Source of the DNA: Monocercomonoides exilis PA203
Lineage: Eukaryota; Protista; Preaxostyla
Length of the DNA stretch: 64,000 nucleotides
Direction of reading: 5' to 3'
NCBI GenBank assembly: GCA_001643675.2
Contig: LSRY02000014.1
Coordinates: forward strand, 1,736,001-1,800,000
Below are positions 3,178-54,632 of the stretch, one piece after another. How positions within the stretch are numbered: the stretch's first letter is position 1; each line of letters starts with the position of its first letter. The position numbers and the translations under genes are program-made. The notes below the pieces were generated by a model, which made no database searches, had not been told where the DNA came from, and saw only the letters and a list, made by a program, of their open reading frames with translations.

Positions 3178-6100
3178 ATGCTAATTGTTTTATTTCGACT
3201 ATATATTTTGTTACAAGGATTCTTTTTTGGTGAATCTTTGAATAAGTGTTTTGATAGAAATGCAAAGAATGATTTCGATTTCCAATATTCACCACAATTA
3301 CATTCTTTTCGTTGTCAAAAAAAAGTGAACTGTCTGGATTATTCATTTTATTTTGAGGCTAAAGATATCGCTCGAAAAGCATATGTGTGTCCATTAAATT
3401 ACAATCAACTGTTTTTCCTTTTCAATTCCTCAATGGATATAATTCATTTGAGCTTGAAATCGTGTTCAAAAACACATTCTTTATGTTGTGATTCACTTTC
3501 ATCGTTGAATATCTTGCGTTTAAGCTTTTTCACATCATCTTCATCCTTGAGTCCAATCATCACATCATCAGGAAAAGTTAATATGTCAGTTATAAATATC
3601 GTTCTTGTGGATCATTCACAAACAATTGGAAACTCGATTGTTCACAGCAACAACTTTGAATCGATTGTTTTTGCTCACTCAACAGTTGAAAACTTTGTTT
3701 TGATGGAATTTGATGGGACAATGTTGTATTCTGGAAAGGTTTCGAACGTCATGATGGAACACTGCCGATTTCAGAACATTTCATGCTCTCATCATCCAAC
3801 CGGCGATTATAATGACAAACCAACATCCAAACGGATTGATATTTCTTCTTCATTTTTCGAAAACTGTATTCAGCCATATTACGGATCAATGGTGGTTCCA
3901 TCCAGCATTTCTTTCATCACTAAAAACTCATCATTCAATACATGCCAAAACAGCGTAATTTTTCCCAACTTATCATATGATGCAAGAGTGACTTTCAACG
4001 AAGGAAACATTTCGTAAGTTAATTGTTTCTTCAAATGCTCATCACCCAATAATTTTGGAGGTGCTTTGAGCCTTGTTGGCGAAGAAATAATCTGCCTTGT
4101 TTTGAGATGCCATTTCAATGAATGCTCTTGTGGAACACCAGATATCAATTGCGATGGTGGATCAATGTACTCCACATTATGCAAAAAAGTGGAAATTTTT
4201 GATTCAAATTGCACAAATTCAAATGCGTCTTTCTGCTGTGGAGGAATCACTTCCAATTCAGATCAACAGTTTTTCATGAATAACTGCTATTTTTTCAATT
4301 GCCACTCTGAATTCTATGCAGCCATTTTGATCGAGCATCCTGATGGTTCTTTTGTTGATTCAACAGTGGTCTCCTCATGCACTGCGACAAATAATGCAGG
4401 AATGTGTTTTTATGCAGCAAATGGAAAAGGATACATCACCGATAGTTATTTTAAAAGCTGTGAATCTGAATGTTGTGGGGCTTTAACTTTCAACAACATT
4501 TATGGTGTCAATCACGATGGAACAATAAAATACTGCTTTTTCAATAGAAATGAGGCAGATGATTCCACACGTGGAAGAGATATCACGCTCATGGAGAGCT
4601 GGATTAATAAAATATCTGATTCAGATGTTGTTGGATGTTATTCAACAAGCAGCTATCCTCGAGTGGTTGATGGCACAAACAACAAGGATTATTGGCTTCC
4701 AGATGCTGTTGTATCTCTCGAAAGTCTTGATGAGTTGTTTGTCTCTTGGCTTAGAGGAGCAGATGAATCTGGCTGTGGATATCGAGCCAGACCTTTCAAG
4801 ACCATCGGATATGCTTGCTCTGAACGGTCAACTCAATATGTAGTTGTTTTCAATGGGCATTACGAAGAAAATATTATATCAGTCAATTCATTCAAAACGG
4901 AATTTATCGGTCACAGATGTGACAATTCGATTGTTCGCTCCATAGATGTGACTTCTGGAAAATCTCTGATTTCAGTGGATAATGGAGAACTTATCATTTC
5001 TTTGTTCACTCTCGTCCACGATTCTTCAACCTCAGCTAGTGGCAGTCTTTTGTCTGTGAATGGAAACAGTATAGTGAAGTTTGAAGGATGTGAGATTCGA
5101 AGCGAGTCCGAAAGTCAGGCACAGCTATTCAGTCGGTCTTTGATTGAAGCAAAAGGTAAATCGACAATAATCATCAACAATTGTTTGTTCAAGCACATTT
5201 GTTTGGAGGATGATCCTTTGATTTCAATGGAATCAGTAAATAATGTTGCTTTTTCAAAATCAGTGTTCGATGGCATTGTGCGAAAGTCAGGAAACGGTTC
5301 GTTGATTGAAGTGACAGTGGACGAGGGTGAGAAATTGATTCTTGTGGATTTCAGGATTCGGAACTGCTCTTGTCTCGATGGAAATGATGGTGCATTGATG
5401 GTGAAGATGAAAGATAGAAGTGAAGTGTCAATAGGCAACAAAAGCTCAAATGAATTCGGAAGTGGTTTCGAACAATGCAAGGCAGATAAAGGAGGAAGTG
5501 AAAGAGGCGTTGGAGGAGGAATCATGATAGACTGCTCTGCTGGAGGGAAGACTTTTGAATTTGGAAGCATCATCTTCACAGGGAATCAAGCAGTGAATAG
5601 AAAGAATGTGTTTGTGATTGCCACAGGGGCTGAAGAGTTGTGCTTTCGTTCAAAGTTTGGCTTTATTCTTGATGAAAATTCACTGGATGAGCTGATGGGA
5701 TTTGAGGAAAGCGAAATAGGGACTGCAATCCCTCTTGTTCTGTTTTGGAAGTCATTTCCTTTGTTCGTGACTGTGAGTGGATCAACTGGCTCTGATCATT
5801 TGAAATGTGGATTTTCAGTGTCTCCATGCAGAACATTACAATATGCTGTCAAGACTCATTTCAGTTCTTCCACAAGAAAAATCAAAATTGTCTCTCCTTT
5901 CAAGTTTGATTGCTCATCAGTTTTTGATTACTGGGGATATGATATTTCTGTTGAAACGAAGGGGACAGTGATTGAGGTTGTTGGGGATTCATCATCTCCT
6001 GAGAATGGATTTATTGAAACAAGAATTGAGACAGACATTTCAAACATATCGTTCTCTCTTCCATCCTCGTTGCCTCAGAGCAAGCCACTTCTGTGCTGCA

Positions 6101-9100
6101 CTTCACATTCGTTGAATATCCTCAATTGTTGTGTCGTTCCATCTGAAAGTAATGTTGTTATTGAATACTGCTTCTGCTGCGATCTCAATGGAACAATGGA
6201 CCTTGATCACTTCGAAGTTTCAGACATGTGTTTTGGTGGCTTTCCTTTCATTTGTGTTTGTGGAGAGAATGCAATAGGAACATAAGATTCTGTTATTCTG
6301 AAAAATGTCACAAGAAATTCAAATGATGGACTGGTTGTAGCCGAGGAAAGAGGATCTTTTTCCATCCAAAACTCAGAGTTTTCATCTTGCACATTGGACA
6401 ATTGCAGTGCCATTTTCAACAAAAATGGAAATTTTGTGAATATCACAAACACTGATTTTCATTCAATAACTCGCCAGAAGCAGAATGGTGCTTGTCTTTG
6501 CATTTCGAGTGAAAACAACTCAGAAGCTGTATCAGTCAATGTTTCTTATTGTGAGTTTTTGAATTGTGGAGTTGAGTCAAAATCAAACGGAGGAGGAGCA
6601 ATTTATGTCTGTTCAGAAGATCAAATCTCATTAGCAGTCGAGCAATGCAGTTTCACTTCATGCCATGCGCCTTGGTCTCAACAAGGCATCACAAAGGATG
6701 GAAGAGGTGGTGCACTATTTCTTGATTTATTTGGCGAGAATCCCTCATTCACAATTGCAGATCACATGTTTTCAGAAAATAAAGCGCAACATGGCAAAAA
6801 CATGTTTCTGAAGGGCAATGATCTGAATTCCACTGTCACAAATGATAAGTTTGCTTTTCAATATGGACAGATGGCGAGTGATGAAACGCTTTTTGTTGGA
6901 AGCGATGCAAATCTGTCAAATACTGATCTTTTCCGATTCCTCATCAAAAATGAGAATGGAACTGTGTTTGTGTCTGAAGATGGGTCTGATGTTTTGAGAT
7001 GTGGAAGCAATGAAGATCCTTGCAAATCCTTTTGGAAAGGGATGAAGCAAATCAAGTCCGATTCTGTTGAAAAGAAAATAAAGACAAAAGGAGAATGTTC
7101 TATCAGAGATGAATTTTTCATTTCCGATTTGGTGATTGAATCATCAACAAGCACAACTAATGAACCTGAGATGAGCAATTTGATGCTTGAGAATGTGTCT
7201 CCTGACAAAAATGTGTTGCTGAACGTTAATCGCAATATGACAATTAATCATGTTCGAATATCCACAAGCTCAGATTTTGTGTGTCTGAATGATGCTCTCA
7301 TTGCCTGCCAAAATGGAAACATCACAATAATGAGTTGCCAGTTCCACTCACTTGCTCCACACACAAATCCTCTTTCAGTTGAATTTGTCCAAATTCTCGA
7401 GGGATGTTTGATGATTCAAGATTTGGAAGTGGAATCAATAAACATTGGGCGAAGCATGATCGTGACTTCCAACAAGGTGAATGTTGAAATTATTGAAATG
7501 AAAATCCAATCAGTGAATCTGGCTGAAGGAAGTCTGATCAATGTTGACCATGTTCCCACAGACGAAAGAAATAAGGAGAAAAAACAGATTCAAATCAACT
7601 CTTCTTCTTTTCTTTCAGTGAACGGAAAGAATGATGAGAGCCGTGTTCTGAGTTGCCTTGACTCCACAAACACGAACATATTCATAGGAACATCGAACTT
7701 TTCTGGATGCCAGTCACCGGAAACACAGAAAGGAGGATGCATTCTCATTAAACTGTGCGAGGATGGAAATTTCCACTTGAAAGAATCCATCGTTGAAATG
7801 TGTGGGTGCTCAACATCAAATGGAAGGGGAGGTGGGCTTTATTTAAGAACAGAACTCGCAGCAAAGCTCAGCATCCAAATTGAACCAATGAAGTTCGAGG
7901 CCAATACAGCCTATGTTGGGAGAGACATATTCATTGAATGCAACGATCTGAACACACAACTGAACGAGACAATGTTCAAAATGGATTTTGATCCGAGCGT
8001 TTTTGTTCATGTGAATGCCATGTCTGGGATTGACAAAAACGAATATTCATCTGAGCCTGTGAACCTTCTCGACTTCATTCTCATTTATCAGTCAGACACA
8101 GTTATTGTGAGCTCAGAACAGAGCAAAGGAGGGAAAGATACAAAGCAATGCCGAACAACTGCTCTTCCTTGTGCCACCATTGGCTACTCCCTCATCCATC
8201 TGACTCATAAAGTGGACAGCAGACTTCTTGTTGACTTGCAGAGTGTGACCAACTGCGAAATCGAACTCTGTGATGTGATCTTGATGTCACGAAAGAAGAC
8301 AGCAGCTGCTATTGAAATAGAAGAAATCACGGAAATGGAAAAGAGATGCATTGTTCAATGTTCGGGTTCGGTTGTTATAAAGCTAATTTCTTTCTGCTTC
8401 CCAACAAAAATAACAACAGCTCACTCCTCATTCTTGTATTCAGAACATGCAGCTCTCTCAATTGAATGTTGTCAATTCTCGGGAAAGACAAGCATTGATA
8501 AATCTCACATTTCATTTGCTCTTGTGGAGCTTGTTGATTCAGAATTGAGTGTTTTTGATCTCTTGATTGAAAACATTTTTGTGGCATATCCTTTTCTGAT
8601 TTGTATTCACTCTTTTTGTGGGAATTTGTCTCTCGGCAAGGTCAGAGTGAATTCTGTTCAAGTCGAAAAGAATATTGTCATTATCGAAGGGAAAGAAAAT
8701 GTTGACACCGATCAAACCAGAGAATCTTTTTATTTTCTCCACTTAAAGTTCGAGAATATCAGCATTTTTGGTGAAGAATCTTCAGTGATAAGTGTTGACA
8801 AATGTGAACATAAAATAGGTTGTGCAAATATATCTGTTGTTCACAAGTGTTGCAAACAAAAAAGGAGGTGCTTTGAAAATGAGTTCATGCCAAAACATTG
8901 CTCTGGATTCATTTTTGTTTGATGGAATTGCGGATGTTAACGATAAATGGGATGAGTCGAATGCTGTGCAGGATGATGTTTGCAGACGGAACGGATCAAT
9001 GGTGGAACTCGAAAACACACCAGCAACAGTGAAAGACACCATCGTATCAAATGCCTCAATTGGAGGGTTGTCTGTGAGAGGCGGAAGCGTTATCATTGAA

Positions 9101-11077
9101 ATGGGGTTGTTCACAAATAACAATCCAAGATTCACAAAATACCCATCTGTGAGAAGAAATATTCTCTGCTCAGATTCTGGAGTGTTGAATGTGATGAGTC
9201 TGAAAGGAGGAGATGGATTGGAGAGAAATACATCGTTGTGGATTTTGAATGAAGGATGTGAATTGGAAGGGACGATTGAGGAGAGAGCATCTCCACTGTT
9301 CATTCCAGTTGTGGAAGAGGCGAGAAATGAGACAGCATCAGATGGGAGAACAATGATCACTTTGATTGGAAGGCTTCTTCTCCCCTGCAATGTTTCGTTG
9401 AAGTTGAGCTTCAGAAATGGAAGGGAAGAGGTGATTGAGAGCTATGGGATTGGTGAAAAGGAAAGTGTGTCAGAGAACGAAATTATTGCAGTTGTTTCAT
9501 CGGCTCAGATGGGAGCAGTGGGAGAAGAGACAGAAGTGTCTGTGAGTGTTCTGTTTGGAAAGAAAGAATCTCCTTCATCGACTGATTCATTTGTTCTGAA
9601 GAACAGAAGCGAAACCCAAGGAAAGGGAGATGACAGAATTGTTGAAGGAGGGAAAGAGGGAAAATCTTATTGGTTGTTGATCGTGATAATCATGGGAATC
9701 GTATTGATAATCGTTCTTGTTGTTTCCATCATTCTGGCCATTCGGTGGAAGAAGGTAAAGAATGAAGCAGAAGATCTGAGAGAGATTGTGAATGACAACA
9801 TCAGAAAAGATCCGAAGGCATTTGAGATGGTGACGATGGAGATGTCGCCTGAGGAGCAGTGGAGGAGAGCAGAGAGGGAGGCAGAGAAGAAGAACGATGA
9901 GAGGATAAAGAAGAGGGTGTATGAGAGGAATATGGAACATTCGGAGTCATCAGAACATCTTCTGTCTGAAAGTGGATCGACTGAATACATCTTGGGGAGA
10001 GATTCAGACAAGATCTTAGAATGGGCATTGGAGAAAGTTGATGAAAAAGAAGAGGAAACAAGGAAGAGAACACCTTCACCTTCCATTTCATCCATCTCAT
10101 CCACTTCAACAACTGATTCAGATTCCACTTTTGTTCGTGGGGAGGATTTGTGCCCCACAACCTCATCGATGTCGAATCTGGTGGATGCAATGGCCTGCTC
10201 ATCGCCTCATGAGAAGCTGATTGTGGATTTGAGGGATTCGCTGTTCATGCTGCTTCATGGGAGGAATGAGAAGAAGGAGATGGCGATTGGGAGTTTGAAG
10301 GAGAGGGAACAGACAGCTGCACAGATCCTGTTCTGGGTGGCGAATGGAGCACTGCATACATTTGATGAAGAAAAGGAATTGCCATCGCTGGCCAATCTGA
10401 GTCCTCACATTGTGCTGTTCTCAGAGCACATGGTGATCTGCATTGCCCTCCACTCCGACTGCTCATCTTCAGACGATTCCGATTCATCATCCATCTGTTC
10501 GATGTCCATGGTTTCTTCATCCTCGTCAAATGTTTCAGTGATGAGCGAGAGATTCACCGACTCACCACCACGTTCATCAGCGTTTGAGGATTGTGAAGAC
10601 AACAGGAAGGAGTGTCTGAGGTGGAAGGCACCCGAGCTGCAGATGAACAAGAAGATGGGAGAAACAAAGGAGTCAGTGGCATTCTCGATTGGGATGATGG
10701 TGTGGGAGTGTCTGACACTGGATATCCCGTTTGGAGAATACGAGGCAGAGGTGGCAGGAGATAAGATATCGAAAGGGGAGAGGCCGAATGTTGAGAAGAT
10801 CCGAGGGAGTGAACTGTATGAGGTTGTTTGGTCATCGATGGGAAAGGACTGGAACGATCGTCCGACACTGAGCGAGATGAAGCGGGAGTTTTATGGGCAT
10901 TTCCCGGCAGGGGCTGTGATTGTGACGATGTCGGATGCGATCTGTGAAAGGGGTGGGGAGAGCACGAGAGAGGGGGAAGGCAGTTTTGCGAGTGGGGAAG
11001 AAGGCTATTCGACAGTTTTTGAGAACACATCAGAGACAACAAAGAAGACAGAAAAGCAGGAGATGAAAGAGCGGTGA
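3178..11077 (+). pseudogene. Disrupted giant receptor-like gene: signal peptide, four Cys-capped beta-helix-like modules, TM helix, TKL-like pseudokinase
   Basis: ORFs 3166-4017, 4066-6285 and 6394-8922 are in one frame, separated by single TAA codons (4015, 6283) with coding-like sequence straight through. A frameshift at ~8820-8850 leads into ORF 8822-11077. The whole is colinear with the intact paralog at 45182-54265. Confidence 0.85.
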
Positions 11078-11445
11078 AAGTGAGATGGAAAAGGGGAATG
11101 TGAAACAAAATAAAAAGAGAGAGAGATCAAAGGAGAATGTGATATATCTTTGCATCGAAGAATCAGTGGGAGTGCTTGTGAGATGTGTTTTGTAATTTGG
11201 TTGTGGTTTTTTCTTTTTCAAAGGATAAGTGGATATTGATAATTTGTTGAAAAGAAGAGTTTGTTTTATTTGGGATGGAAGTGATTTGATGATCACAATC
11301 AGCTGCTCACATCTCAAAGGATGATTGTTGCCATTATTCGAAAACGAAATGAGGAGCAACAATTGCTTGAGGAAAGATGAGCAACTGACGGTTTTGTTCT
11401 TTTTATTATTTATGTTTGCGATTTGGATAAAATGTCAATTTGTTT
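9521..11445 (+). repeat. Direct repeat, copy 1 of a ~1.9-kb near-identical 3' block (juxtamembrane, cytoplasmic tail and ~370 bp 3' flank)
   Basis: Aligns to 52709-54632 at offset 43188 through the stop codon. Nearly base-for-base identical from ~10.7 kb through the non-coding flank. Confidence 0.95.
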
Positions 11446-13599
11446 TTGAATATTTTTTTTTCCTTATTTAAATTCAATTTGAAAAACGAGTTGTGAAACT
11501 GAAATCACAATAAATAATCCACATACATATTTGTCCACATCACATCTATCCGTTTACAAATATTTTTGAATTGTGAAACATTTATCAAAAAATTGAAAAC
11601 AAATTATAACTGAAAATTCGATATAAAAGCTGAAATATGATTTTTTCAAAACTATTCAATTCGCCTTTTACATGAAATGTGATTTTCTTCAACGAAAAGA
11701 AGAATTCTTGCTTTTAAAGTCGAAGAATATAAACCAATTATTGCGAAATGGAAAAGCATCATTTCTGAGCAAACATTTTCAATGGATTCACCAAAAAAAT
11801 AATTTATGTGTATAATTCTTGTGCATGGAATCTTTATTGTTGCATGCTTTTATTGGATTATCAGTGATTTGAAAATACAATTTTGTAATAATTATATTTC
11901 ATCACTATCGAGGATTTTTTAACTCATTTTTTGTATTTTTATACAGAAAATTCGTTGATGAAAGACAACACATTTTCATTTGTGAAAAATGGAGCTGTTT
12001 GTTGAAAATAAAGTTATTTTTATTGTTTGAAATCTTTTTTCTTTGTTTGAATTCAATAATCCTTTTCAATTCTATTTGTGTATCATCCTTTTTGTATTCG
12101 AGTTATTTTTGAAAAAGAAAACTGTAAATACTGAAAAAGATTCACAAACAACGATAATTAAAAACATTTGAAAATTGAAATTATTAGGAAGAACGATTTT
12201 GAGGAACAACTGAACCTCATTCTTGAATTAACAAAGAAAAATACTTTTATTGTTTATCAATTTTGACTTTTTATTCTCTGATATTGATTTATTGAAAATG
12301 ATCCTTCTTTCGCACATTCCTTGTTAGGCATTGAGTTTATTGGCTTTATTTTCTTTTTCATCACACATTAACTTTTTAAAAAACCATGATACATTTTGTA
12401 TATGGGACAAAATATTTCACCTCAGGCATTTTCACTGAAAAATACTGCACTTTTCATTGACTTTTTGATATCAAAAATCGCAATAAAAATGGGTCCATTT
12501 TTTGACATTCGTGAATTGTTGGAAAACTTAATGTTTTGATTACAACGATGCCTGTTCACGGATCTGAAAATCAATTTTATTTTGAAATCTAAGAAAGCGA
12601 AATAAAGTTATGAGTGAAACAAAGATTCAATGCTTTGTGCATAAAAAGCTTGAAAGTCCGAATTTTCCACCATATAAGAATTCACATTTTTTTTCAGAAG
12701 TGTTGATTTTTCAAAAGTTTCATATCTTTGGAGAGAAATTATTCTTTCAAAAGAAAAAAAGCATGATATTTGTTGAAAGCAAACATGTTTAAGATTATAT
12801 TCATTCAAAAATTGTCCTTGAAAAAAGTTTTCACTTTTCATTGTTTATTTTTCAATATTCTAAGTGAATTCTCAAACAGAAAATTTTGATAGAAAGATGA
12901 TTATTTCAAAAATAATCACCCTATTATTTTTCTGAAACATTTTCGCTCCTCATTCCTTTTTCGGTAAGTGGGTGATTTTTTTTGACACCAAAAAAAAAGA
13001 TCAAAAGTCTAAAAAAAAAATCAATTGTGCCATTTTTTGATCAAAGAGTTAAATCAAATTTTATACAAGCATTAGCTTTTATTTCAGTCGTATATATTTG
13101 TTTTATTTCCTTATGCAAAAAAACATACCTCTTTTATGTTTTTTAATGAAAGAGAATTTTTTGATCAAGTTTTTTAAAAATTAACAAAAAATAAACGAAT
13201 AAAACTTCAGGAAAAAAGTAGAAGATTCAGGACTAACTTTACAATACTGATAATAGGAAAATAAAAACAAAATACATTGGAAAAGTTTGATATTAGAAAA
13301 AAAAAATATTTTTTTGATTTTCAAAAAAAGAGAACTGTTAGATATCTTTAATTTCTTATGATTTAACATCACAAAATCATCATTCCAGCTTTGTAGCTCA
13401 GCTTCAACAGTAAAACAAAATTGAAAACTGTGGAAAAGGAAATGTTTCTAAGAATAACAATTGATTTAATTTCGTTATCTCTTTCTATTCACCTGATTAT
13501 TTGGCGTTCAAACTTTCTTCTCCATCTCCTTTGTTCTTCATCCAATAATTTCCATTATTGTTTCTTTCACATTCTCATTCCACATACACCCTCTGTCGC

Positions 13600-14240
13600 T
13601 CCTTAATCGCCAAAATAATTCATTCCACTCATCCTGCACTAACACTTTCTTCTTCTTTTATTTCTTCGTTAATTGCCACTTCCCCTACACTCTCCCTCTC
13701 CTATACCAAATGCACCATCACCAACATCCACTCAGCTCCACAAAACCAACAGACTGCTACCAATGGCGGGTGCATCTCATTCGCCTCATCTGCCTCTGCC
13801 AACACATTTTCGGTGAGCAACACAGCCTTCTCCACCTGCTCTGTGAGCGAGGATACAAGTTCTGGAGGAAGAGGCGGTGCTCTCATGATCGAGTTCAATG
13901 AAGGCTCACAAGTGTCAGAATCCTCCTTTTCCTTCACCAATTTCGTGTTTTCAGCCAACAAGGCCAGTGTCGGAAGAGATATGTATTTTGTGTGTGAATC
14001 CCTTGTCGCTTCTGTGAAGGAACCCTTGTTCGCCTTCATGAGAAGCATCACTCAAAAATAAAATACGATTGTTGGACACGATAGAACGCAAATGTTTAAC
14101 GATTGAGATGTTGACTTATTAATATTTCTCAGTTGACAATACGCAAACACGGTAGATATTGGTAGCGTGTCTGGTGTCAAGGAAGTGAATCGTGGTTTGG
14201 AGAAAGGATCATGTTTGAATGAGAACGACGGGATTGGACT
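13600..14240 (+). pseudogene. Decayed fragment of a receptor ectodomain module
   Basis: GGRGGALMIEF...FSANKASVGRDMYFVCESLVASV...DVDLLIFL*..GLEKGSC aligns with GGGLWVG...FEENRARSGMDVFVVCDDLRRVV...VDLFIFI..CGMEKCPC of the 45-kb protein. Several stop codons. Confidence 0.75.
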
Positions 14241-35048: not shown

Positions 35049-35101
<53 letters not shown>

Positions 35102-38893: not shown

Positions 38894-38924
<31 letters not shown>

Positions 38925-42142: not shown

Positions 42143-42175
<33 letters not shown>

Positions 42176-45181: not shown

Positions 45182-48100
45182 ATGATGAACTTTGTGTTTT
45201 TTATCACTGCGTGCGTCTTTGCTATTGATGAGGCAAAAGAAGCATCAGCAAAGGAGATGTGCGAATTGGATGCAAAAGTTGTGTTCCGGCTGTCAGGGAA
45301 CATGAATGATAATTATGAACCAGAAAATAATCAGAATAGCAAGATATTATCGACATTTGTTGCTGTGAACAGCTCAGTGAGCGCAGCGAGTGTGCTGCAG
45401 ATTCAGCAGGAAGGAAAAGCTTGCTTTTTTGTTTGTGAAGGGTCAAGACTGGATATCAAAGGATGCATGATTTTTATTTCATCACAAATGAGCCCATTTG
45501 CGGTGGATGGAGGAAGCATGCATTCAGTGAATCTGACGATTGGAACTTTGAAGCCATTTGCACCAATTCCGCGACTTTTTTGCTCATCTTTCAAAAATTC
45601 TGAGAGAGATGGAACAGACTCGATAACTCTTCGAGACTCGTCGTTTTCATCATTTGAATTGGCATCTGCTCCATTTCTTGCACCGGATGCGAGCTGCTTT
45701 GTGAAAGCCTCTGGTTTGAAGATGACAAATATTTCTATTGCATCAGGAGCGCAAAGGGAAATGGATTCGAGAGCAAGAACAGAAACAACGATTGAAGGCT
45801 GCTCGTTTTTCAGAGTTTGGGATGCTGTTGATGGGGGTATTTTGATGTCAGTGAACAGCCCATGTGCCTCGCTGAGAGCAACAAACACCTTATTTGAGTG
45901 TTGCTTTCGAACGATGAATGTTGATGAATCAGGAGGACGCAACATGACAAGGTGTGAACTGGGAGCCAATGAAACACATTCTTTCACGGATTGCGAATGG
46001 TATCAAACGGGACATGTTGTATCTGGAAGTGCTATTTATTTGAATGGAAATTCGACTCTTGAATGTGAAAGATGCTCATTCAAGAACATGAGTCAAGTTG
46101 GCGATGGAACAGTTGATGTTCAATCAGCAGCAGGTGTGAAAATGTTAGGCTGTAATTTCACAAATTGCTTGGCAGAAACAAATACAGGTGGAATGATAAT
46201 TTATGAGCAAAGAGGAGACTATTTTTTTTCTGAATGTATCTTTTTTGAATGCAAGGCTAGAGTTAACTATGCAGGAGGATTACGCATACACCAATCTTCT
46301 GGAAATGAGGATGAAACAATTGAGAAATGCAAATTTATTCGCAATGTCGCAGGATCATTTGGTGGAGGATTATATATGGAAAGACAGTCGAATTCATATA
46401 TAATTTCTGAATGTGAATTTGAAGGAAATTTAGCAAATGGAACAGGAACAGAAATACTAGAAGGTGGAGGCGGAGGAATACGTTTAAATTCAGCAAGTTG
46501 GATGAAAACTGAACCACCTCCAAAATTGATATCATTTTGCTTATTCAGTGGAAACAAGGCAAAAAATGAAGAAGGCCATGATGTTAAAATCAAAAATTAT
46601 TTTTTGAAAGGTTCACCATTTGAGTCATCGTTCTCAACAACCCCCTCAAAGAGAGTATTTTACAACGACAGCCAAACAGATTTTGATTCATGGCTTTTTA
46701 CAATCAAAACAACATTTGCCAGAGCAGATGGGATTACAGGGCCTGTGTGTGGGACAACACAGACCAATCCATGCAACACGATTAAACAGGCATTCAACAT
46801 GATTGAGAAAGGAGCAGAAGGAACAGTGAATATTCTTCAATCGACCTTTTCTTCAACGGCTCTATTCATTGGAGGGGGAGATATTACATTCAAAGGAGAA
46901 AGCGAGAGCGAGTGTATCATTTCCACAAAATTGCTGAATTCTCATGAGTGTTTGTTCACATTGCATTCGGGATCGATGGGATTGTCTTTGGTGACAATTC
47001 GACACAACAGCGCAGAATCATCATCTTCCTTGTTTGAGATGAGAACAGGAGCACAGAAACTGACACTGAAGAATGTGATCATATCAGGGGCAGAAGATGG
47101 GCAGAGTCACACATTTGATGTTTCACCATTCAAAGTGATATTTGAGAAAATGAAGATGGAAAACTGTTTGATTGAGGATATTGGACTGGGAGATTGCTCA
47201 TTGTTTGAGGAAGAGGAGGAAAGTGGAGTTGGGAGAGGGATGCTGGGAAATGTGACGATCCAAAGGATCAGCCGAATGAGAGGAGATGGGGTGATATTCA
47301 GCACTGAAAGTGAGAGAAGCGATTCATGGGAGCTGGAGAATAACACATTCAGAAACTGTATGAACAAGGAAGGGAATGGAGGAAGCATTGCTTGGAGTGT
47401 TGGTCAAAGTGGGATATTCAAGATTGGCAGAGGAGAGGTGACAACGGTGATTGGGGAGTGTGGGGCAGAGAATGGAAGAGGAGATGAGAAGGGAAGAGGA
47501 GGAGGGGTGTATTTGGAGTTGTCTTCTCCTTCAGTTGTGTTTGAGATTGTGAATGTGGGATTTGAAAATAATTATGCAGAACATGGTGTGAATGTGTTTA
47601 TTGCTTCGAATCAGCTGGAATTGGTTCCGAAAGGGAGATATGGATTTATTTCGCTTTTGAGCGAGGATGTGCATGAAGTGGAGGGAATGGGAGACACGAA
47701 CAATGCAACACTGGTGATTCCGATTGTGTGCTATCTCCTGGATGTTCCGAGGAGTGAGATCTATGTTTCAGCTTCAGGAGCTGATCATCCTCGGTGTGGG
47801 CACACATTTTTCGAGTGCCGAACACTGAGCTGTCCGATCGAAAGGGAAGAGAGCACACCAGGAGATGGAACAACAACAGCGACAATCAAAGTTGGAAATG
47901 GAGTTGAGGTTGGCTCGACAGTGATCTTTTCGAAATTGACAAGAGTGATTGAAGGAACAGGGGATGATGGATCGCTTGTTGTTGGAGGTGAGGCAAGTTG
48001 CAAAGGAGATGAGGAAGGATGCATTGGAGTGTTTGTGGTGCTGAAGGAGACAAGGATGAGGAAGATTGAGCTGGTGATTCCATCTGTTCTTGAACGTCAT

Positions 48101-51100
48101 GAAGCGATATTCCAGTTGAAAGGCGAAACACTGAACTTGAGTGAATGTGTTGTTGGATTTGGAGTTGGAACTGGAGTGAATTTTGTGGAATACAGTTTGA
48201 TTGTTGTGGAAAAGGGAGAGGCGAATGTGACCTCACTGAGATTGGATTCAATGAGGTTTGGAAAGCCTGTGATAAAAGCGAATGGGGGATTGTCATCTGT
48301 CTCGTTGAAGAATGTGGAGCTGAATGATATGAACTTTGAAGGAGAAAAGGGATTTGCTGTTTGTGAGGGAGGAAGCACACTCACAGCAGAAAGTGTGATT
48401 TCCAGTGATTGTGAAATGGGAGGAAGCAGCTTGATTTGGGCAGGGAGCAATTGTATTGCGAGGATGAGGGAATGTTCGTGGAGTTCATGTAATTTTGTTG
48501 ATTCAGGGATAATAAAAGGAGTTGAGGCAAAGGAGATATCCATTTGGGGATGCAATGGGAGCAATGTTCGAGTGAGTGAAGGAGACGGAGGGATGACGAA
48601 CGGAGTGGCTGCAGAAGGAGGCTTCGTGGATGTGTGGAACACGAGTATTGAAGGATGTGTGGTAGAAAAAGGGAATGGAGGAGGGATGAGAGTGGAATTG
48701 AAAGGGGATGCACAACTGAAGATCAGGAGCGAAACAGAAGTGACACTGATGAAAAAATGTTCGGCTGGACTGGAAGGGACAACGAATGGAGGAGGGTGTG
48801 GAGGAGGGTTGTGGGTGGGGATTGAAGGAGAGAGATATGAGTTTGATCTCAGTGGAATGAGGTTTGAAGAGAACAGAGCAAGGAGTGGGATGGATGTGTT
48901 TGTTGTGTGTGATGATTTGAGGAGGGTTGTGAATGGAAGCAGTTTCTCGTTCAGTGGAGAGATAATTGAGAGAGAGAATTCGCTGAGTGGGATAGATAGA
49001 CAGAAGTTTGTGAGTGAGGTTGATCTGTTCATATTCATTGATGGATTCAGCTCATCTGTGATTGAGGTGGAGAGTGAGACTGGAGACAATGGAATGTGGT
49101 GTGGGATGGAGAAATGCCCGTGCAGGAGTGTGGATTATGGAATTGGGAGGCTTGGTGGAGAGGGAGAAAAGAAAATAGTGATAAGTGGGAGCACGAGTGT
49201 TGAGAAGGTGGGAGATGTGAGTGGAGTTCGGATTGAAGGGAAAGGCAACACGAGAATGAAGGTGGTTGTGGAGAAAGGAATTGAAGGAGGAGGGGAAAGT
49301 GTTCTTGATTCGAAAGGAGTGAGTGCATTTGTGAATGTGGGATTTGAATTGCCTGGATTATTTGAACAGAGGAAGGATGTAGTGATAAGCTCATCAACAG
49401 GAAGTGGTGTTTTGGAGATGGAATTGTGTTCGCTTGTGATGCAGGAAGGGGAAGAAGAGGCGATAGAATATCGAATCATCAGGAGCAGTGGACAAGCTGT
49501 GAGGATGAAGTGGATATCAATAAATAACATCAGGACAAGAAAGTATTTGATGGATCTTGCTCTTCTTGGGATGGAACAGAATGGAGGAGAGAATGAAGTT
49601 GTGAGCATCAGCAACTGCTCGTTTGAGAGCCTGTCGGTTGTTGGCGCAGATGATTCAGCTGTGATATGTGGAGAGGTGAGGAGAGTGATGAAGATAGAAC
49701 AGAGCAACATGAGTGACGTCACAGGAGGAGAGAGCATGAATGGTGGGGCAGTGAGGGTGAATATCCTTGATTCAGGGATGATTCATGTGAAAGAGGGGAT
49801 GATGGAGAGATGTGCAGCAGAGAAAGTGAGTGGTGGGAAAGGAGGATGGCTGTATGTGAATTGCAGTGAAAGGAGGGGAGGAATGCCATTCAAGTTTGAG
49901 GGTGTGAAGTTTGCTGAGAATGAGGCATTTGTGGGGAAGAACATGTTCATTTTGGATTCAGATCTGAATGCGACAGTGAGGAGTGAGACATTTGCGATTG
50001 ATGTTGAAGAGATGGAAGATGATCCGAATGAGTTTGTTGGAAGCGATGAGAAGCGGATGAGCACAGATCTATTGAGATTTGTGATTGAATACAGGAGCGA
50101 GAGGATTGTGGTGTGGGAAAAGGGAGATGATGTTGTTCGATGTGGGAGTGAAGAGGATCCGTGTGAGACATTGGAAATGGGATTGAAGCACATTGAGAGA
50201 GAAGGAGAGAGAAAAGTGGTGGGAGTGAAGGAAAAGATAAGAGTGGAAGGGGAACATGATTTGAGTGGGATTGATGTGGAATCAGTGGGAGCAGGATATG
50301 ATGAGATAGAATATGGAACAGTTGTGATGGGGAGTGAAGGAGAAAGTGGAGCAAAAGTGTGTCTTCGCAACAGTGGAGCATTCATTCTGAGAACACTGGA
50401 GATGTGTGTGATGAATGTTTTAGGAAGTGTGGAAGCAGGGATGATTGTGAGTGAGGGAGGGAAAATTGAATGGGAAGACTGTTCAGTCACATGGAAGGGA
50501 AAGAGAGAAGGGATGGGGAATGTTGCATTTTGTGTTGTGAAGAAAGGGGAGCTGGAGATGAAGAGGTTCAAAGTGCTTTCGTATTTTGGGAAGAGAAATG
50601 TGTTTGTGGTTGGTGGAGAAGTTGTGAGTGTGATTGACGAATTCACAGTGATTGAAGCCACATTGGAGAAGGGGAGTTTGTTTGAAATTGAAGGAGAGGG
50701 AGCAAATGGAGGAGGTGAGATGAGGATGAAGAATTGCAGTATTGGATCAGTGGAAGGAGAAGGAGCTGATCCAAGTGTTGTTTCGAGCAAGAGTGGGAGT
50801 GGAGTGAAGCTTGTGGTGGAAGATTCGCTGATTGAAGGGTGCAGTTGTGGGAGAAGCACAAAGGGAGGGGCGATGCTGTTTGAGTTGAATGAAGGAGGAT
50901 GGTTCGATGTTGTGAACACGAGTGTGAAGCAGTGTGGATGCTCTGTGAGCGAAGGGAAAGGAGGCGGGGTGTATCTGAAGACTGAATTGAGGGGTGAGTT
51001 GGATTATGTGTTTGATGGGGTGATATTCCGAAGGAACACAGCATTCATCGGGAATGATGTGTTCATTGTGTGTGACTGCATCGAGAGGCAAATCAACGAA

Positions 51101-54100
51101 ACACAGTTCAACCTCGACTTCCGTGATGTGGAGTTCATCAGGCAGAATGCGATCTATGGGATGGATGCGGGAGAGCACAAGGAGGAGGCGATGGACTTGA
51201 TGAGTCTGATTGTGAAATACCAGTCAGACACGATTGTGGTGTCGAGCAAAGAAGGGAAAGGGGGAAGCAATGAGCAGCAGTGTGGGAAGCCTTCACTTCC
51301 TTGTGCGACGATTGGGTTTGGGCTGAGGCATCTGACACACGATTTTCTGAGTCAAATGGTTGTTGATGAAGAGTCAGTGATTGATGAGGAAATTGGATTG
51401 GACACACTCACGCTGAGCGGGATGCATGAAGTGCAGAGTCGAGTGGTTGTGAAAGGGAGGATGAATTGCAGCAAAGAAATGATTGTGGAGACAAATGGGC
51501 AGGTGTATGTTCGATGGATTCAATTTGCCTTTGAAGAAGTGGAATCAACACCAACTCCACTTCCAACAACACATTCATTGTTCATGAAGATAAGTTCGGG
51601 AAAGACATCGATCAGCATGTGTTCATTTGAAGGAGTGAGCTCGGCTGAGAGGGAAATGGTGGAAGTGCCATTCAGTCTGATATTTGTGGAAAGGGGGAAA
51701 TGCTCAATGGGGAATGTGAGTGTTTTGTGGCTTTCATTTTTGAGTGAAGCAGCCATGATTATGGAAGAGGATACTGAAGCGAATGGATTGACACTCAGAA
51801 ATATTGAGGGAAGCAAAGGCTGTTTAAAGATCAGTGAAGCTGGGAATTCGAGAATGGAAAAAGGATGGATGGGAAGGGCGAATGGCGATGAAGCAGAAAT
51901 GAAGAACAGAAAGGAAAATGAATTTTCATTTTCAATTCTGTCATCTTCATTTGAGAACATCACATGTGCGGATGAGAGTGCAGGGGTGGTTGATGTTGAA
52001 GGGATGGAAGGAAATGTGGAGTTTTCGAACTGTTCATTTGGTGGGTGTTCATCGAGAAGAAAGAAAGGGAAGATGATATCACTTTTGATGTGCAAGAATA
52101 TTCAGATGAGGCTGTGCTTGTTTGATGGAAAGGAAGAAAGAAAAAAGGATTTGAATGAGGAAGTGGATGTGTGCAAATGGAATGGATCAGTTGTTGAGGT
52201 GAAGGAGAGCTCAGGGGAGATAAGGGATACGAGTTTTGTGAACTGCTCTGATGGAGGTCTTTCTATTTGGAGAGGAAGTGTGGAGATTGAGAAAGGAGAA
52301 TTTATGAACAATAATCCATCTATTGAAAAATATCCATCAGCCAGGAGGAACATTCTCTGCTCAGATTCAGGAGTGTTGAATGTGGTGAGTTTGAAAGGAG
52401 GAGATGGAGTTTTGCCAAATACATCATTGTGGATTCTGAATGAAGGATGTGAGATAAGCGGGATTGTTTCTGAGAGATTGTCATCCTTCTTCATTCCAGA
52501 GTTGGGAATAGTCGAAATGGAAGAGATGGGAGCAGAACTTCTTCTGAGGTTCAAGGGAAAGCTGTTGCTTCCATGCAACATATCGTTCAAGATTGTGAAA
52601 CAAGTTGTTGATGAAGATGTTGTGGAAAGATATGAATTCAATGAAGAAGGATGTGTATCAGAAAATGAAGTGGATGGAAAAGTCCCCATTGAAACAATAA
52701 ACAATGCAGGAGAAGAGACAGAAGTGAGTGTGAGTGTTCTGTTTGGAAAGAAAGAATCTCCTTCATCGACAGAATCGTTCATCCTGAAGAACAGAAGCGA
52801 AACCCAAGGAAAGAAAGATGAAAAACTCGTTGAAGGAGGAAAAGAAGGAAAATCTTATTGGTTGTTGATCGTGATTGCGCTTGTTGTGATATTGTTGATT
52901 GTTCTGATCGGATTTATTTTATTTGTTGTTCGGTGGAAGAAGGTGAAGAATGAAGCAGAAGATCTGAGAGAGATTGTGAATGACAACATCAGAAAAGATC
53001 CGAAGGCATTTGAGATGGTGACGATGGAGATGTCGCCTGAGGAGCAGTGGAGGAGAGCAGAGAGGGAGGCAGAGAAGAAGAGTGAGGAAAGGATGAAGAA
53101 GAGGGTATATGAGAGGAATATGGAACATTCGGAGTCATCAGAACATCTTCTATCTGAGAGTGGATCAACTGAATACATTTTGGGAAGAGACTCAGATAAG
53201 ATCCCAGAATGGGCATTGGAGAAAGTTGATGAAAAAGAAGAAGAGATAAGGAAGAGAACACCTTCACCTTCCATTTCATCCATCTCATCCACTTCAACAA
53301 CTGATTCAGATTCAACTTTTGTTCGTGGGGAGGATTTGTGCCCCACCACCTCATCGATGTCGAATCTCGTGGATGCAATGGCCTGCTCATCGCCTCACGA
53401 GAAGCTGATTGTGGATTTGAGGGATTCACTGTTCATGCTGCTTCATGGGAGGAATGAGAAGAAGGAGATGGCGATTGGGAGTTTGAAGGAGAGGGAACAG
53501 ACAGCTGCCCAGATTCTGTTCTGGGTGGCGAATGGAGCACTGCATTCATTTGATGAAGAAAAGGAATTGCCATCGCTGGCCAATCTGAGTCCTCACATTG
53601 TGCTGTTCTCAGAGCACATGGTGATCTGCATTGCCCTCCACTCCGACTGCTCATCTTCAGACGATTCCGATTCATCATCCATCTGTTCGATGTCCATTGT
53701 TTCTTCATCCTCGTCAAATATTTCAGTGATGAGCGAGAGATTCACCGACTCACCACCACGTTCATCAGCGTTTGAGGATTGTGAAGACAACAGGAAGGAG
53801 TGTCTGAGGTGGAAGGCACCCGAGCTGCTGATGAACAAGAAGATGGGAGCAACAAAGGAGTCGGTGGCATTCTCGATTGGGATGATGGTGTGGGAGTGTC
53901 TGACACTGGATATCCCGTTTGGAGAATACGAGGCAGAGGTGGCAGGAGATAAGATATCGAAAGGGGAGAGGCCGAATGTTGAGAAGATCCGAGGGAGTGA
54001 ACTGTATGAGGTTGTTTGGTCATCGATGGGAAAGGACTGGAACGATCGTCCGACACTGAGCGAGATGAAGCGGGAGTTTTATGGGCATTTCCCGGCAGGG

Positions 54101-54265
54101 GCTGTGATTGTGACGATGTCGGATGCGATCTGTGAAAGGGGTGGGGAGAGCACGAGAGAGGGGGAAGGCAGTTTTGCGAGTGGGGAAGAAGGCTATTCGA
54201 CAGTTTTTGAGAACACATCAGAGACAACAAAGAAGACAGAAAAGCAGGAGATGAAAGAGCGGTGA
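45182..54265 (+). CDS. Giant (~3027 aa) intronless single-pass receptor-like protein: signal peptide, five Cys-capped beta-helix (pectin-lyase/Pmp-like) modules, TM (~52857-52930), TKL-like pseudokinase
   Basis: 9.2-kb open frame. MMNFVFFITACVFA signal-like start; repeated GGxxY / FxxNxA motifs; CGxxxxPCxT caps; a long hydrophobic helix followed by RWKK; kinase C-lobe motifs LRWKAPE, FSIGMMVWE, IPF and RPT. Confidence 0.92.
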   Translation: MMNFVFFITACVFAIDEAKEASAKEMCELDAKVVFRLSGNMNDNYEPENNQNSKILSTFVAVNSSVSAASVLQIQQEGKACFFVCEGSRLDIKGCMIFISSQMSPFAVDGGSMHSVNLTIGTLKPFAPIPRLFCSSFKNSERDGTDSITLRDSSFSSFELASAPFLAPDASCFVKASGLKMTNISIASGAQREMDSRARTETTIEGCSFFRVWDAVDGGILMSVNSPCASLRATNTLFECCFRTMNVDESGGRNMTRCELGANETHSFTDCEWYQTGHVVSGSAIYLNGNSTLECERCSFKNMSQVGDGTVDVQSAAGVKMLGCNFTNCLAETNTGGMIIYEQRGDYFFSECIFFECKARVNYAGGLRIHQSSGNEDETIEKCKFIRNVAGSFGGGLYMERQSNSYIISECEFEGNLANGTGTEILEGGGGGIRLNSASWMKTEPPPKLISFCLFSGNKAKNEEGHDVKIKNYFLKGSPFESSFSTTPSKRVFYNDSQTDFDSWLFTIKTTFARADGITGPVCGTTQTNPCNTIKQAFNMIEKGAEGTVNILQSTFSSTALFIGGGDITFKGESESECIISTKLLNSHECLFTLHSGSMGLSLVTIRHNSAESSSSLFEMRTGAQKLTLKNVIISGAEDGQSHTFDVSPFKVIFEKMKMENCLIEDIGLGDCSLFEEEEESGVGRGMLGNVTIQRISRMRGDGVIFSTESERSDSWELENNTFRNCMNKEGNGGSIAWSVGQSGIFKIGRGEVTTVIGECGAENGRGDEKGRGGGVYLELSSPSVVFEIVNVGFENNYAEHGVNVFIASNQLELVPKGRYGFISLLSEDVHEVEGMGDTNNATLVIPIVCYLLDVPRSEIYVSASGADHPRCGHTFFECRTLSCPIEREESTPGDGTTTATIKVGNGVEVGSTVIFSKLTRVIEGTGDDGSLVVGGEASCKGDEEGCIGVFVVLKETRMRKIELVIPSVLERHEAIFQLKGETLNLSECVVGFGVGTGVNFVEYSLIVVEKGEANVTSLRLDSMRFGKPVIKANGGLSSVSLKNVELNDMNFEGEKGFAVCEGGSTLTAESVISSDCEMGGSSLIWAGSNCIARMRECSWSSCNFVDSGIIKGVEAKEISIWGCNGSNVRVSEGDGGMTNGVAAEGGFVDVWNTSIEGCVVEKGNGGGMRVELKGDAQLKIRSETEVTLMKKCSAGLEGTTNGGGCGGGLWVGIEGERYEFDLSGMRFEENRARSGMDVFVVCDDLRRVVNGSSFSFSGEIIERENSLSGIDRQKFVSEVDLFIFIDGFSSSVIEVESETGDNGMWCGMEKCPCRSVDYGIGRLGGEGEKKIVISGSTSVEKVGDVSGVRIEGKGNTRMKVVVEKGIEGGGESVLDSKGVSAFVNVGFELPGLFEQRKDVVISSSTGSGVLEMELCSLVMQEGEEEAIEYRIIRSSGQAVRMKWISINNIRTRKYLMDLALLGMEQNGGENEVVSISNCSFESLSVVGADDSAVICGEVRRVMKIEQSNMSDVTGGESMNGGAVRVNILDSGMIHVKEGMMERCAAEKVSGGKGGWLYVNCSERRGGMPFKFEGVKFAENEAFVGKNMFILDSDLNATVRSETFAIDVEEMEDDPNEFVGSDEKRMSTDLLRFVIEYRSERIVVWEKGDDVVRCGSEEDPCETLEMGLKHIEREGERKVVGVKEKIRVEGEHDLSGIDVESVGAGYDEIEYGTVVMGSEGESGAKVCLRNSGAFILRTLEMCVMNVLGSVEAGMIVSEGGKIEWEDCSVTWKGKREGMGNVAFCVVKKGELEMKRFKVLSYFGKRNVFVVGGEVVSVIDEFTVIEATLEKGSLFEIEGEGANGGGEMRMKNCSIGSVEGEGADPSVVSSKSGSGVKLVVEDSLIEGCSCGRSTKGGAMLFELNEGGWFDVVNTSVKQCGCSVSEGKGGGVYLKTELRGELDYVFDGVIFRRNTAFIGNDVFIVCDCIERQINETQFNLDFRDVEFIRQNAIYGMDAGEHKEEAMDLMSLIVKYQSDTIVVSSKEGKGGSNEQQCGKPSLPCATIGFGLRHLTHDFLSQMVVDEESVIDEEIGLDTLTLSGMHEVQSRVVVKGRMNCSKEMIVETNGQVYVRWIQFAFEEVESTPTPLPTTHSLFMKISSGKTSISMCSFEGVSSAEREMVEVPFSLIFVERGKCSMGNVSVLWLSFLSEAAMIMEEDTEANGLTLRNIEGSKGCLKISEAGNSRMEKGWMGRANGDEAEMKNRKENEFSFSILSSSFENITCADESAGVVDVEGMEGNVEFSNCSFGGCSSRRKKGKMISLLMCKNIQMRLCLFDGKEERKKDLNEEVDVCKWNGSVVEVKESSGEIRDTSFVNCSDGGLSIWRGSVEIEKGEFMNNNPSIEKYPSARRNILCSDSGVLNVVSLKGGDGVLPNTSLWILNEGCEISGIVSERLSSFFIPELGIVEMEEMGAELLLRFKGKLLLPCNISFKIVKQVVDEDVVERYEFNEEGCVSENEVDGKVPIETINNAGEETEVSVSVLFGKKESPSSTESFILKNRSETQGKKDEKLVEGGKEGKSYWLLIVIALVVILLIVLIGFILFVVRWKKVKNEAEDLREIVNDNIRKDPKAFEMVTMEMSPEEQWRRAEREAEKKSEERMKKRVYERNMEHSESSEHLLSESGSTEYILGRDSDKIPEWALEKVDEKEEEIRKRTPSPSISSISSTSTTDSDSTFVRGEDLCPTTSSMSNLVDAMACSSPHEKLIVDLRDSLFMLLHGRNEKKEMAIGSLKEREQTAAQILFWVANGALHSFDEEKELPSLANLSPHIVLFSEHMVICIALHSDCSSSDDSDSSSICSMSIVSSSSSNISVMSERFTDSPPRSSAFEDCEDNRKECLRWKAPELLMNKKMGATKESVAFSIGMMVWECLTLDIPFGEYEAEVAGDKISKGERPNVEKIRGSELYEVVWSSMGKDWNDRPTLSEMKREFYGHFPAGAVIVTMSDAICERGGESTREGEGSFASGEEGYSTVFENTSETTKKTEKQEMKER

Positions 54266-54632
54266 AAGTGAGATGGAAAAGGAGAATGTGAAACAAAAAA
54301 AGAGAGAGAGAGATCAAAGGAGAATGTGATATATCTTTGCATCGAAGAATCAGTGGGAGTGCTTGTGAGATGTGTTTTGTAATTTGGTTGTGGTTTTTTC
54401 TTTTTCAAAGGATAAGTGGATATTGATAATTTGTTGAAAAGAAGAGTTTGTTTTATTTGGGATGGAAGTGATTTGATGATCACAATCAGCTGCTCACAGC
54501 TCAAAGGATGATTGTTGCCATTATTCGAAAACGAAATGAGGAGCAACAATTGCTTGAGGAAAGATGAGCAACTGACGGTTTTGTTCTTTTTATTATTTAT
54601 GTTTGCGATTTGGATAAAATGTCAATTTGTTT
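52709..54632 (+). repeat. Direct repeat, copy 2 of the ~1.9-kb 3' block
   Basis: Matches 9521-11445. Confidence 0.95.

Follow-up and report, generated by a model that had tools for sequence, protein, structure and literature searches.

The var genes of Plasmodium falciparum encode PfEMP1 proteins, in which a variable number of ectodomain cassettes is followed by one transmembrane helix and a conserved cytoplasmic segment, and ectopic recombination between the genes has produced mosaics. There are about 60 var genes, largely subtelomeric, which are expressed in a mutually exclusive manner and are under antibody pressure. Here, we describe two genes of a comparable layout, A and B, in a 64,000-nucleotide stretch of the genome of Monocercomonoides exilis, a gut flagellate that lacks mitochondria (hereafter the window; contig C8, positions 1736001-1800000, in the assembly of 82 Mb), an AT-rich region in which the coding islands are G+A-rich. 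We consider it likely that A and B are members of a family of giant type I receptors shaped by purifying selection and by exchange between neighbouring paralogs, with no programmed switching.

A preliminary description of this locus, made from the sequence by itself, had left it possible that the family was novel. It is not, having already been published as an expanded family of protein tyrosine kinases (PTK) of the tyrosine kinase-like (TKL) group (PMC6759080, PMC8767320). With 332 'tyrosine kinases', 320 of them in the TKL group, it is the largest gene family of the species (Karnkowska et al. 2019, PMC6759080). It also overlaps the unclassified repeats that account for 35% of the assembly (Treitli et al. 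2021, PMC8767320), which was built from Oxford Nanopore Technologies (ONT) reads and polished with short reads (PMC8767320). The genes of that 'protein tyrosine kinase' expansion and those considered here are the same, with PF07714 matches and an overlap with unclassified repeats, but where 332 kinases were reported we find about 930 genomic copies. The tail lacks the catalytic motifs that were checked, most of the length of each protein is a predicted beta-helix ectodomain, and the genes are mosaic. In the portions of PMC6759080 and PMC8767320 covered by a term search there was no description of the ectodomain, of the pseudokinase state or of recombination, and nothing on the architecture of the M. 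exilis receptor family was present in papers dealing with the genomics of Preaxostyla or with transmembrane kinases of protists. What appears to be new here is the predicted beta-helix ectodomain, the dead kinase tail, the copy number of about 930 and the mosaicism.

Two giant receptor-like genes had been recognised in the window. Both are indeed present on the forward strand and B is intact, but A is broken by two in-frame TAA codons and a 2-nt deletion. The ectodomain subfamily of gene A comprises L001 (also on C8), L002 and L003 (C44), L004 and L005 (C19) and L006 (C40); A is 89% identical in DNA to L001 over the entire gene and about 80% identical to L002-L006. The nearest paralogs of gene B are L009, 27 kb downstream and inverted, and L010, 70 kb upstream. 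The features that bear on exchange are given below in window positions.

3178-11077, plus strand: gene A, from the ATG at 3178 to the stop codon at 11077, a 4-module receptor pseudogene in open reading frame (ORF) pieces
9152-9262, plus strand: conserved stalk block of gene A (RRNILCSD...SLWILNEGCE), a recurrent exchange boundary
9263-9526, plus strand: extracellular juxtamembrane cassette, of type I in gene A, 94-100% identical to L010 and only 60-66% identical to A's own subfamily and to B
9668-9754, plus strand: transmembrane helix of gene A (YWLL...RWKK)
9795-11077, plus strand: cytoplasmic tail of gene A, with the kinase remnant at ~10151-10918 and LSPHIVLF at 10397-10420
11078-11430, plus strand: 3′ flank of gene A, common with B at 99%; after the third breakpoint, L010 is at 96% and B at 44%
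45182-54265, plus strand: gene B (MONOS_15505), an intact type I membrane protein of 5 modules with a signal-peptide-like start
45952-53386, plus strand: alternating tracts of gene B, L010-like at 45952-46747 and 49885-50176, L009-like at 47936-49240 and 52147-53386
54266-54655, plus strand: 3′ flank of gene B, common with gene A

Similarity between A and B at the DNA level is confined to 9136-11470 against 52327-54655 and amounts to 90.7% overall, but it is very unevenly distributed. In 200-nt windows, identity is 62-64% at 9188-9588, 94-100% from 9782 to 11428 and 44% past about 11428. The two genes are 98-100% identical across about 1 kb, their sharing extends about 350 nt beyond the stop codon, and the 3′ flank of A at 11108-11407 is 99% identical to B. 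The juxtamembrane region, tail and 3′ flank had together been called almost identical; this is true of the tail and flank (94-100%) but not of the transmembrane helix or of the juxtamembrane region (62-64%), which is of a different type in each gene. The idea that the shared tail is an assembly collapse was rejected, as about 9% of positions are not the same in the two copies.

Runs of informative sites divide gene A into a stretch that is L001-like up to 9160, one that is L010-like at 9194-9780 and includes the 400-nt juxtamembrane cassette, one that is B-like at 9795-11366, and a final L010-like stretch from 11446. The breakpoints accordingly fall at 9160-9194, at 9780-9795 (just past the transmembrane helix) and at 11366-11446. 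Over the same tail span, A is 46-92% identical to its subfamily relatives on other chromosomes, with several tail windows at only 46-62%, and the C-termini of the relatives outside C8 cannot be aligned with gene A at all. In a maximum-likelihood tree of 8990-9185, the gene A subfamily and its distant kin L007 and L008 form a clade with 100/100 support. Approximately unbiased (AU) tests reject monophyly of the subfamily both for the juxtamembrane region (9190-9590, p 6e-91) and for the tail (9700-10780, p 7e-65). Two ectodomain subfamilies and two juxtamembrane types occur in all four combinations, so that the four-gamete condition is violated. L001 and L018, which are convergent neighbours, are unrelated before the equivalent of 9142 but show complete identity over the equivalent of 9218-11584. 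Their switch, between the equivalents of 9142 and 9218, is therefore a second, independent breakpoint in the RRNILCSD...SLWILNEGCE block.

Gene B tells a similar story within its ectodomain. Compared with L009 and L010 at 680 informative sites, it shows 113 runs where 333 would be expected (z -17.3; MaxChi permutation p <= 0.001), and the gene A subfamily displays clustering of the same kind but weaker (z -7 to -9). Exchange has taken place with the paralogs that lie physically closest, and C8 carries nearly all of the most similar tails. Each of the two genes is made up of tracts that resemble its nearest paralogs, a mosaicism that is demonstrated at the evolutionary timescale only. The proposal that these genes have been diversified by recombination thus stands, since congruent ectodomain and tail trees are rejected by the AU tests and mosaic genes are present.

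Substitution rates separate what is held constant by selection from what has been acquired. The ratio of non-synonymous to synonymous substitutions (dN/dS) of the tail is about 0.1 across the family. Against paralogs on other chromosomes dS is saturated (~1.1) while dN stays at 0.11-0.16, and family-wide conservation of the tail is therefore due to selection. Among the C8 copies, the C-terminus plus flank has a dS of only about 0.03. Within the B subfamily, dS is higher in the tail (0.3-0.5) than in the ectodomain (0.13-0.25), as separate acquisition of the tails would predict. In the ectodomain, dN/dS has an overall value of 0.32-0.35 and ranges from 0.09 to 0.61 in 75-codon windows. None of these ectodomain windows exceeded 1 in our windowed test for positive selection, and gene-wide diversifying selection is not supported.

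The family to which the two genes belong is very large. At least 521 M. exilis proteins of 1.7-5.4 thousand amino acids (aa) have tails that are 68-93% identical to that of gene B, and the 30-mer encoding PHIVLFSEHM occurs 931 times in the genome compared to 0 times for a control. The genome thus contains about 930 tail copies, which are found on most contigs. About one in six scored tails lies in a short open frame, and this suggests that many copies are broken. Many family tails face each other in convergent pairs, with 3-5 kb from tail to tail, and the two members of a pair use the same synonymous codons in the PHIVLFSEHM 30-mer (for example G000:C1:2494/7349, C1:75793/80623 and C6:727570/731667, and likewise L001/L018 on C8), a pattern which suggests that convergent neighbours often arise by inverted duplication or convert one another. 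Members share a signal peptide, 3 to 8 tandem modules with a predicted beta-helix fold, a conserved stalk of about 270 aa, one transmembrane helix and a tail of about 430 aa. A tail search outside M. exilis recovered no close family, only Blattamonas nauphoetae proteins and P0213. The former are the nearest relatives, at 21-31% identity and with the same degenerate catalytic loop, and loss of catalysis is therefore old. P0213 (a metagenomic protein of 1792 aa, on a 6.9-kb Logan contig) has the same beta-helix architecture (hhalign 99.8%) and a degenerate kinase tail that is 27% identical.

The preliminary description's view that the tail is a catalytically dead kinase is supported on several counts. 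Pfam PK_Tyr_Ser-Thr (PF07714) matches the tail of gene B with 36.5 bits (cut-off 23.1) but only over profile positions 160-257, which correspond to the C-lobe, and sequence matches in the PDB are limited to the same C-lobe stretch, beginning with the APE motif. Alignments show LANLSPHIVLF in the catalytic loop where HRDLKPxNIL is expected, IAL stands at the DFG position, and a Ser/Asp-rich insert takes the place of the activation loop. Neither an HRD-like motif nearby nor a DFG within 40 aa was found in any of the 172 family proteins checked. The N-lobe could not be detected by sequence in Pfam or PDB searches, none of which was aimed at the Gly-rich loop or the VAIK lysine. An AlphaFold2 model of the tail has a core predicted local distance difference test score (pLDDT) above 90 and comprises a kinase C-lobe plus two short N-lobe strands. 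Its closest match in Foldseek is the pseudokinase ILK, followed by RIPK1, BRAF and KSR2 (TMt 0.5-0.58). On sequence and predicted structure, the tail is best described as the putative remnant of a TKL-type kinase, truncated in its N-lobe and catalytically dead.

The ectodomains of A and B had been thought alignable only at the level of motifs. They are true homologues that align along about 1600 aa at 23-30% identity (E 4e-61 to 4e-90). Both genes open with a hydrophobic signal-like segment, followed by modules of about 350-400 aa that each close with CG..PC.T[IL] after GG[AG]x and FxxNxAxxGxD[IV]F motifs. The proposed module numbers, four in A and five in B, agree with the count of the recurring CG..PC.T motif (at nt ~4774, 5806, 7000 and 8149 in A, and including one variant copy in B), and the implied difference in length is about 389 aa. 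Among 151 family proteins, the number of motifs grows with protein length, from a median of about 2260 aa at 3 motifs to about 3900 aa at 7. A BLASTP self-comparison of gene B modules gave no internal match at E <= 1e-3; they are related to one another at the motif and fold level only.

In terms of known domains, Pfam returned nothing for ectodomain pieces of A and B at E <= 0.1, and PF13229 is carried by a few family members. A profile search for ectodomain relatives of 413-1314 aa, a range that excludes longer kin, found just one M. exilis fragment. Structure prediction was more informative, and was carried out on the following part of gene B with a family alignment of 79 sequences.

49079-51331, plus strand: two modules of gene B (aa 1340-2090), modelled by AlphaFold2 as tandem right-handed parallel beta-helices

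This model (pLDDT 91.3, predicted TM-score 0.80) consists almost entirely of short strands. Its best Foldseek matches are two-domain PL6 alginate lyases, a phage tailspike and pectin methylesterases, all at probability 1.0. The ectodomain modules are accordingly predicted to be right-handed beta-helices, an assignment based on these matches together with single-domain matches of TMt ~0.5.

The lesions in gene A were judged against four intact relatives.

4015-4017, plus strand: in-frame TAA in gene A, TTT in the four intact relatives
6283-6285, plus strand: second in-frame TAA in gene A, Leu codons in the four intact relatives
8843-8846, plus strand: 2-nt deletion after 8844 in gene A, CAC--AAG compared to CACAAAAG in the four relatives, which shifts the frame

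All three were compared with short-read contigs of X1-X3, three DNA runs made on the same sample, in a check that spanned 3950-8950. Contigs of all three runs cover 3950-4129 without any difference from the assembly at the first TAA, and the second is equally free of differences in contigs spanning 6099-6388 (X1) and 6201-6388 (X2). The deletion is supported by X1 and X2 contigs over 8523-8881 that agree with the assembly, and a minority X3 contig has one further base missing at 8858. On the evidence of the relatives and of the short-read contigs, gene A is a real pseudogene rather than a spliced gene or a sequencing error. Introns had been a further candidate explanation for its stop codons and were rejected, as the frame continues with family-type motifs around both TAAs and sense codons occupy these positions in the four relatives. 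The disabling of gene A is recent.

Gene B, on the other hand, is open throughout. It lies in a single ORF (45062-54265, 3067 codons) with a likely ATG at 45182, which is the annotated start of MONOS_15505, and its tail is 100% identical to that of MONOS_15505. The transmembrane helix is at 52856-52942 and the kinase remnant at ~53339-54106, with LSPHIVLF at 53585-53608. About 147 aa of the window's continuous ORF (~45700-46140, aa ~215-360) are left out of the NCBI model of MONOS_15505 (P0001, 2880 aa). Since these residues are present in the paralog MONOS_10852, the intron of that model may be an artefact of annotation. Downstream of gene B, 55512-60406 on the minus strand contains two long, low-complexity ORFs rich in Ser, Glu and Lys, for which Pfam gave sub-threshold matches only.

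Between the two genes, the preliminary description had counted at least four orphan ectodomain fragments, two of them inside elements with terminal inverted repeats (TIRs). We found five fragments, and both elements have real, multi-copy TIRs.

13627-14265, plus strand: orphan ectodomain fragment, 71% identical at the amino acid level to residues 373-566 of P0092, in a dispersed repeat at 12970-16600
15333-15879 and 16009-16341, minus strand: two weak ectodomain-like fragments in the same repeat (12970-16600)
17105-23181, no strand assigned: 6-kb TIR element, holding a fragment at 22268-22613 (minus strand) that is 85% identical to residues 608-682 of P0054
23203-26401, no strand assigned: 3.2-kb TIR element, holding a weak stalk-like fragment at 23970-24516 (plus strand)

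The 3.6-kb dispersed repeat (12970-16600) has copies on C74, C1 and C13 at 90-96% identity and about 30 partial copies. The TIRs of the 6-kb element match at 28 of 30 nt, their core is present 261 times in the genome (0 for a control), and about 20 copies of the element, at 75-86%, include the block that bears the fragment. These TIRs, TATATGG[C/G]TAAATTTTTTTGAAAAGT (17105-17134 and 23152-23181), belong to a family that resembles miniature inverted-repeat transposable elements, with 261 ends in the genome and many pairs about 224 nt apart in addition to the 6-kb form. For the 3.2-kb element, the 17-nt TIR core occurs 16 times compared to 0 for a control, and copies of the element are at 79-89%. 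Although the fragments are real, the notion that they form a local pool of donor cassettes did not hold up. They are at best 29-38% identical to gene B, and no tracts are shared between any of the five and A or B. Their best matches are with other subfamilies (71% to P0092, 85% to P0054), and the stretches that bear them all have copies elsewhere in the genome. Judged by sequence, the orphan fragments are transposon cargo or relics and not donors for A or B.

Other ORFs between A and B gave weak matches below the curated Pfam cut-offs, none of them related to receptors or kinases. This interval also contains an inverted duplication (28456-29906 and 32834-34284) of 1.4 kb, with arms that are 99.9% identical and 2.9 kb apart. 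Each arm bears the 5′ part of a 250-aa ORF (27929-28684, minus strand, and 34056-34808, plus strand), of which there is a diverged third paralog at 35278-36039 (minus strand); none of the three has a Pfam match. Between the arms, a 263-aa ORF (31086-31877, minus strand) with a hydrophobic C-terminal segment has a weak, sub-cut-off match to the glycosyltransferase-like Caps_synth family (E 8e-5). At 38705-39620 there are about 900 nt of an imperfect CTT-rich repeat with 9/12-nt periodicity. One of its frames reads as poly-Leu, and the strongly negative GC and AT skew in this bin is due to the repeat.

How might such a family have come about? In the explanation that we favour, strong purifying selection holds the tail constant across the whole family, and ectopic gene conversion or segment exchange operates between physically close paralogs on C8. 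This exchange has pasted juxtamembrane, tail and 3′-flank segments of the C8 type onto unrelated ectodomains and shuffled tracts within the ectodomains of close paralogs, with boundaries that recur in the conserved stalk block just outside the membrane. Recombination of this kind would amount to ordinary concerted evolution and shuffling at the evolutionary timescale, as in other contingency gene families. It is plausible that the predicted beta-helix ectodomains bind glycans or gut bacterial surfaces and that the dead kinase serves as a docking scaffold. Several points weigh against this explanation or limit it. The evidence for the junctions in gene A is the assembly itself and the fact that they recur in other genes, the read contigs having spanned 3950-8950, and the direction of conversion was taken from the commoner type within the subfamily. 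Whole-model Foldseek TM-scores for the two modules are low (0.2-0.3), the proposed ligand binding and scaffold signalling are read from predicted folds, and the location at the cell surface is putative. The one RNA library yielded a single 164-nt contig on gene A, which neither shows nor excludes transcription. Fast mitotic exchange may also be compatible with the evidence. One bolder possibility, which we think unlikely, is that the stalk block is a recombination hotspot at which any ectodomain can be re-paired with any tail, and mitotically at an appreciable frequency. Few of the ~930 genes would then be expressed per cell, and pseudogenes such as A would feed a repertoire for variation or for prey or host recognition.

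Programmed surface variation of the VSG/var/VSP type, with restricted expression, frequent mitotic recombination and donors in the form of pseudogenes and fragments, is the alternative that the architecture most readily brings to mind. The features of such systems that we do find are a large family of ~930 copies with a variable exposed N-terminal part on a constant C-terminal anchor, and real mosaic genes with a recurrent boundary between ectodomain and stalk. In addition, pseudogene A has undergone very recent exchange with intact B (98-100% over about 1 kb), and about one in six scored tails is in a short open frame. Silent donor cassettes are another matter. The fragments in the window lie in dispersed repeats and have no tract in common with A or B, although A itself shares recent tracts with B. 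Moreover, no ectodomain window has dN/dS above 1, copies occur on most contigs and are not concentrated at dedicated expression sites, and the tracts are 1-5% off their partners, which fits evolutionary and not somatic timescales. The organism is also regarded as a gut commensal, so that pressure from adaptive immunity is not evident (PMC6759080). Taken together, we regard programmed variation as distinctly improbable, and we place at the same level the view that transposons are the main force behind the spread of the family and its fragments, with TIR elements capturing and moving receptor pieces, so that the locus would be a landscape of transposons and not a receptor system. The latter view draws on the two fragments in many-copy TIR elements, on a third in the 3.6-kb dispersed repeat and on the genome-wide overlap of the family with unclassified repeats (PMC8767320). 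Against it, whole genes keep open frames of 2000-4100 aa under purifying selection, no TIRs were seen flanking A or B, and the exchanged tracts end in conserved coding blocks and not at element ends.

Two further accounts dispense with exchange altogether. The mosaics could be assembly or polishing artefacts of a repetitive family, given that the genome was assembled from Nanopore reads with short-read polishing (PMC8767320), that paralogs are in places 85-99% identical, where polishing can mix variants, and that the gene A junctions lie outside the read-checked 3950-8950. Polishing cannot, however, create kilobase tracts or a 400-nt segment that is ~38% different between types. The same boundary is present in independent gene pairs, a B-type ectodomain is joined to the other juxtamembrane type in P0002, which is listed by both EukProt and NCBI, and over the 5 kb that were checked the assembly is matched by the short-read contigs; an artefact is thus very unlikely. 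The least probable explanation, in our estimation, is plain birth-and-death duplication without exchange, in which the likeness of the A and B tails would reflect common descent under selection. Selection alone does explain the family-wide conservation of the tail (dN/dS ~0.1, saturated dS), and paralogs cluster by contig as local duplication predicts. Yet the relatives of gene A on C44, C19 and C40 bear different juxtamembrane, tail and C-terminal types, congruence is rejected by the AU tests (p 6e-91 and 7e-65), and all four combinations of ectodomain and juxtamembrane type are present. The switches are sharp (60% compared to 97-100% identity), and the non-coding 3′ flank is 99% identical where the ectodomains are only ~25% identical.

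On the present evidence, the 'tyrosine kinases' of a model organism for mitochondrial loss can be re-read as giant, probably beta-helical surface receptors on a dead kinase scaffold, and their number is about three times the published one. The expansion would then point to recognition at gut surfaces rather than to phosphosignalling. At about 8 kb per gene, the family would occupy, as a rough estimate, close to a tenth of the genome, and receptor genes may account for part of the 35% 'unclassified repeats'. Clear tract mosaics and a recurrent boundary make the family tractable for studying how repertoires that are variable outside and constant inside evolve in a deep-branching eukaryote.

Several described systems share one or other of these properties. 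The transmembrane kinases (EhTMK) of Entamoeba histolytica (for example the B1 family, PMC2880585) are, by description, likewise a large type I receptor family with a kinase-type tail in a gut protist. Many EhTMK copies are truncated, paralogs can be very similar, and single members are expressed selectively. The EhTMK ectodomains consist of Cys-rich repeats and not beta-helices, and there are tens of members rather than hundreds. The tail model finds its best structural counterpart in ILK (Foldseek E 1.6e-6, 20% identity), which has similarly lost catalytic residues while keeping the fold, but the M. exilis tail differs in that most of the N-lobe is absent, a long Ser/Asp-rich insert is found in the activation segment, and it is membrane-anchored. 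On the outside, the predicted fold and tandem order match those of beta-helix proteins such as PL6 alginate lyases, tailspikes, pectin methylesterases, autotransporter passengers and chlamydial Pmp. The GG[AG][ILVM] and FxxN-like motifs occur once per module in the receptors, and chlamydial Pmp proteins have GGA/FxxN motifs. There is no match to these proteins at the level of Pfam sequence families, and the receptors here are eukaryotic type I membrane proteins. Plant Pack-type transposons are TIR-bounded elements that carry pieces of host genes, and the elements in the window are like them in being bounded by TIRs, non-autonomous in appearance, loaded with a host-gene piece and amplified to many copies. 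With regard to var/PfEMP1, the domains are unrelated to those of the M. exilis receptors, and mutually exclusive expression, a subtelomeric location and antibody pressure are hallmarks described for var. What the two have in common is a varying number of cassettes outside, a single transmembrane helix, a conserved part inside and genes that are mosaics of their paralogs.

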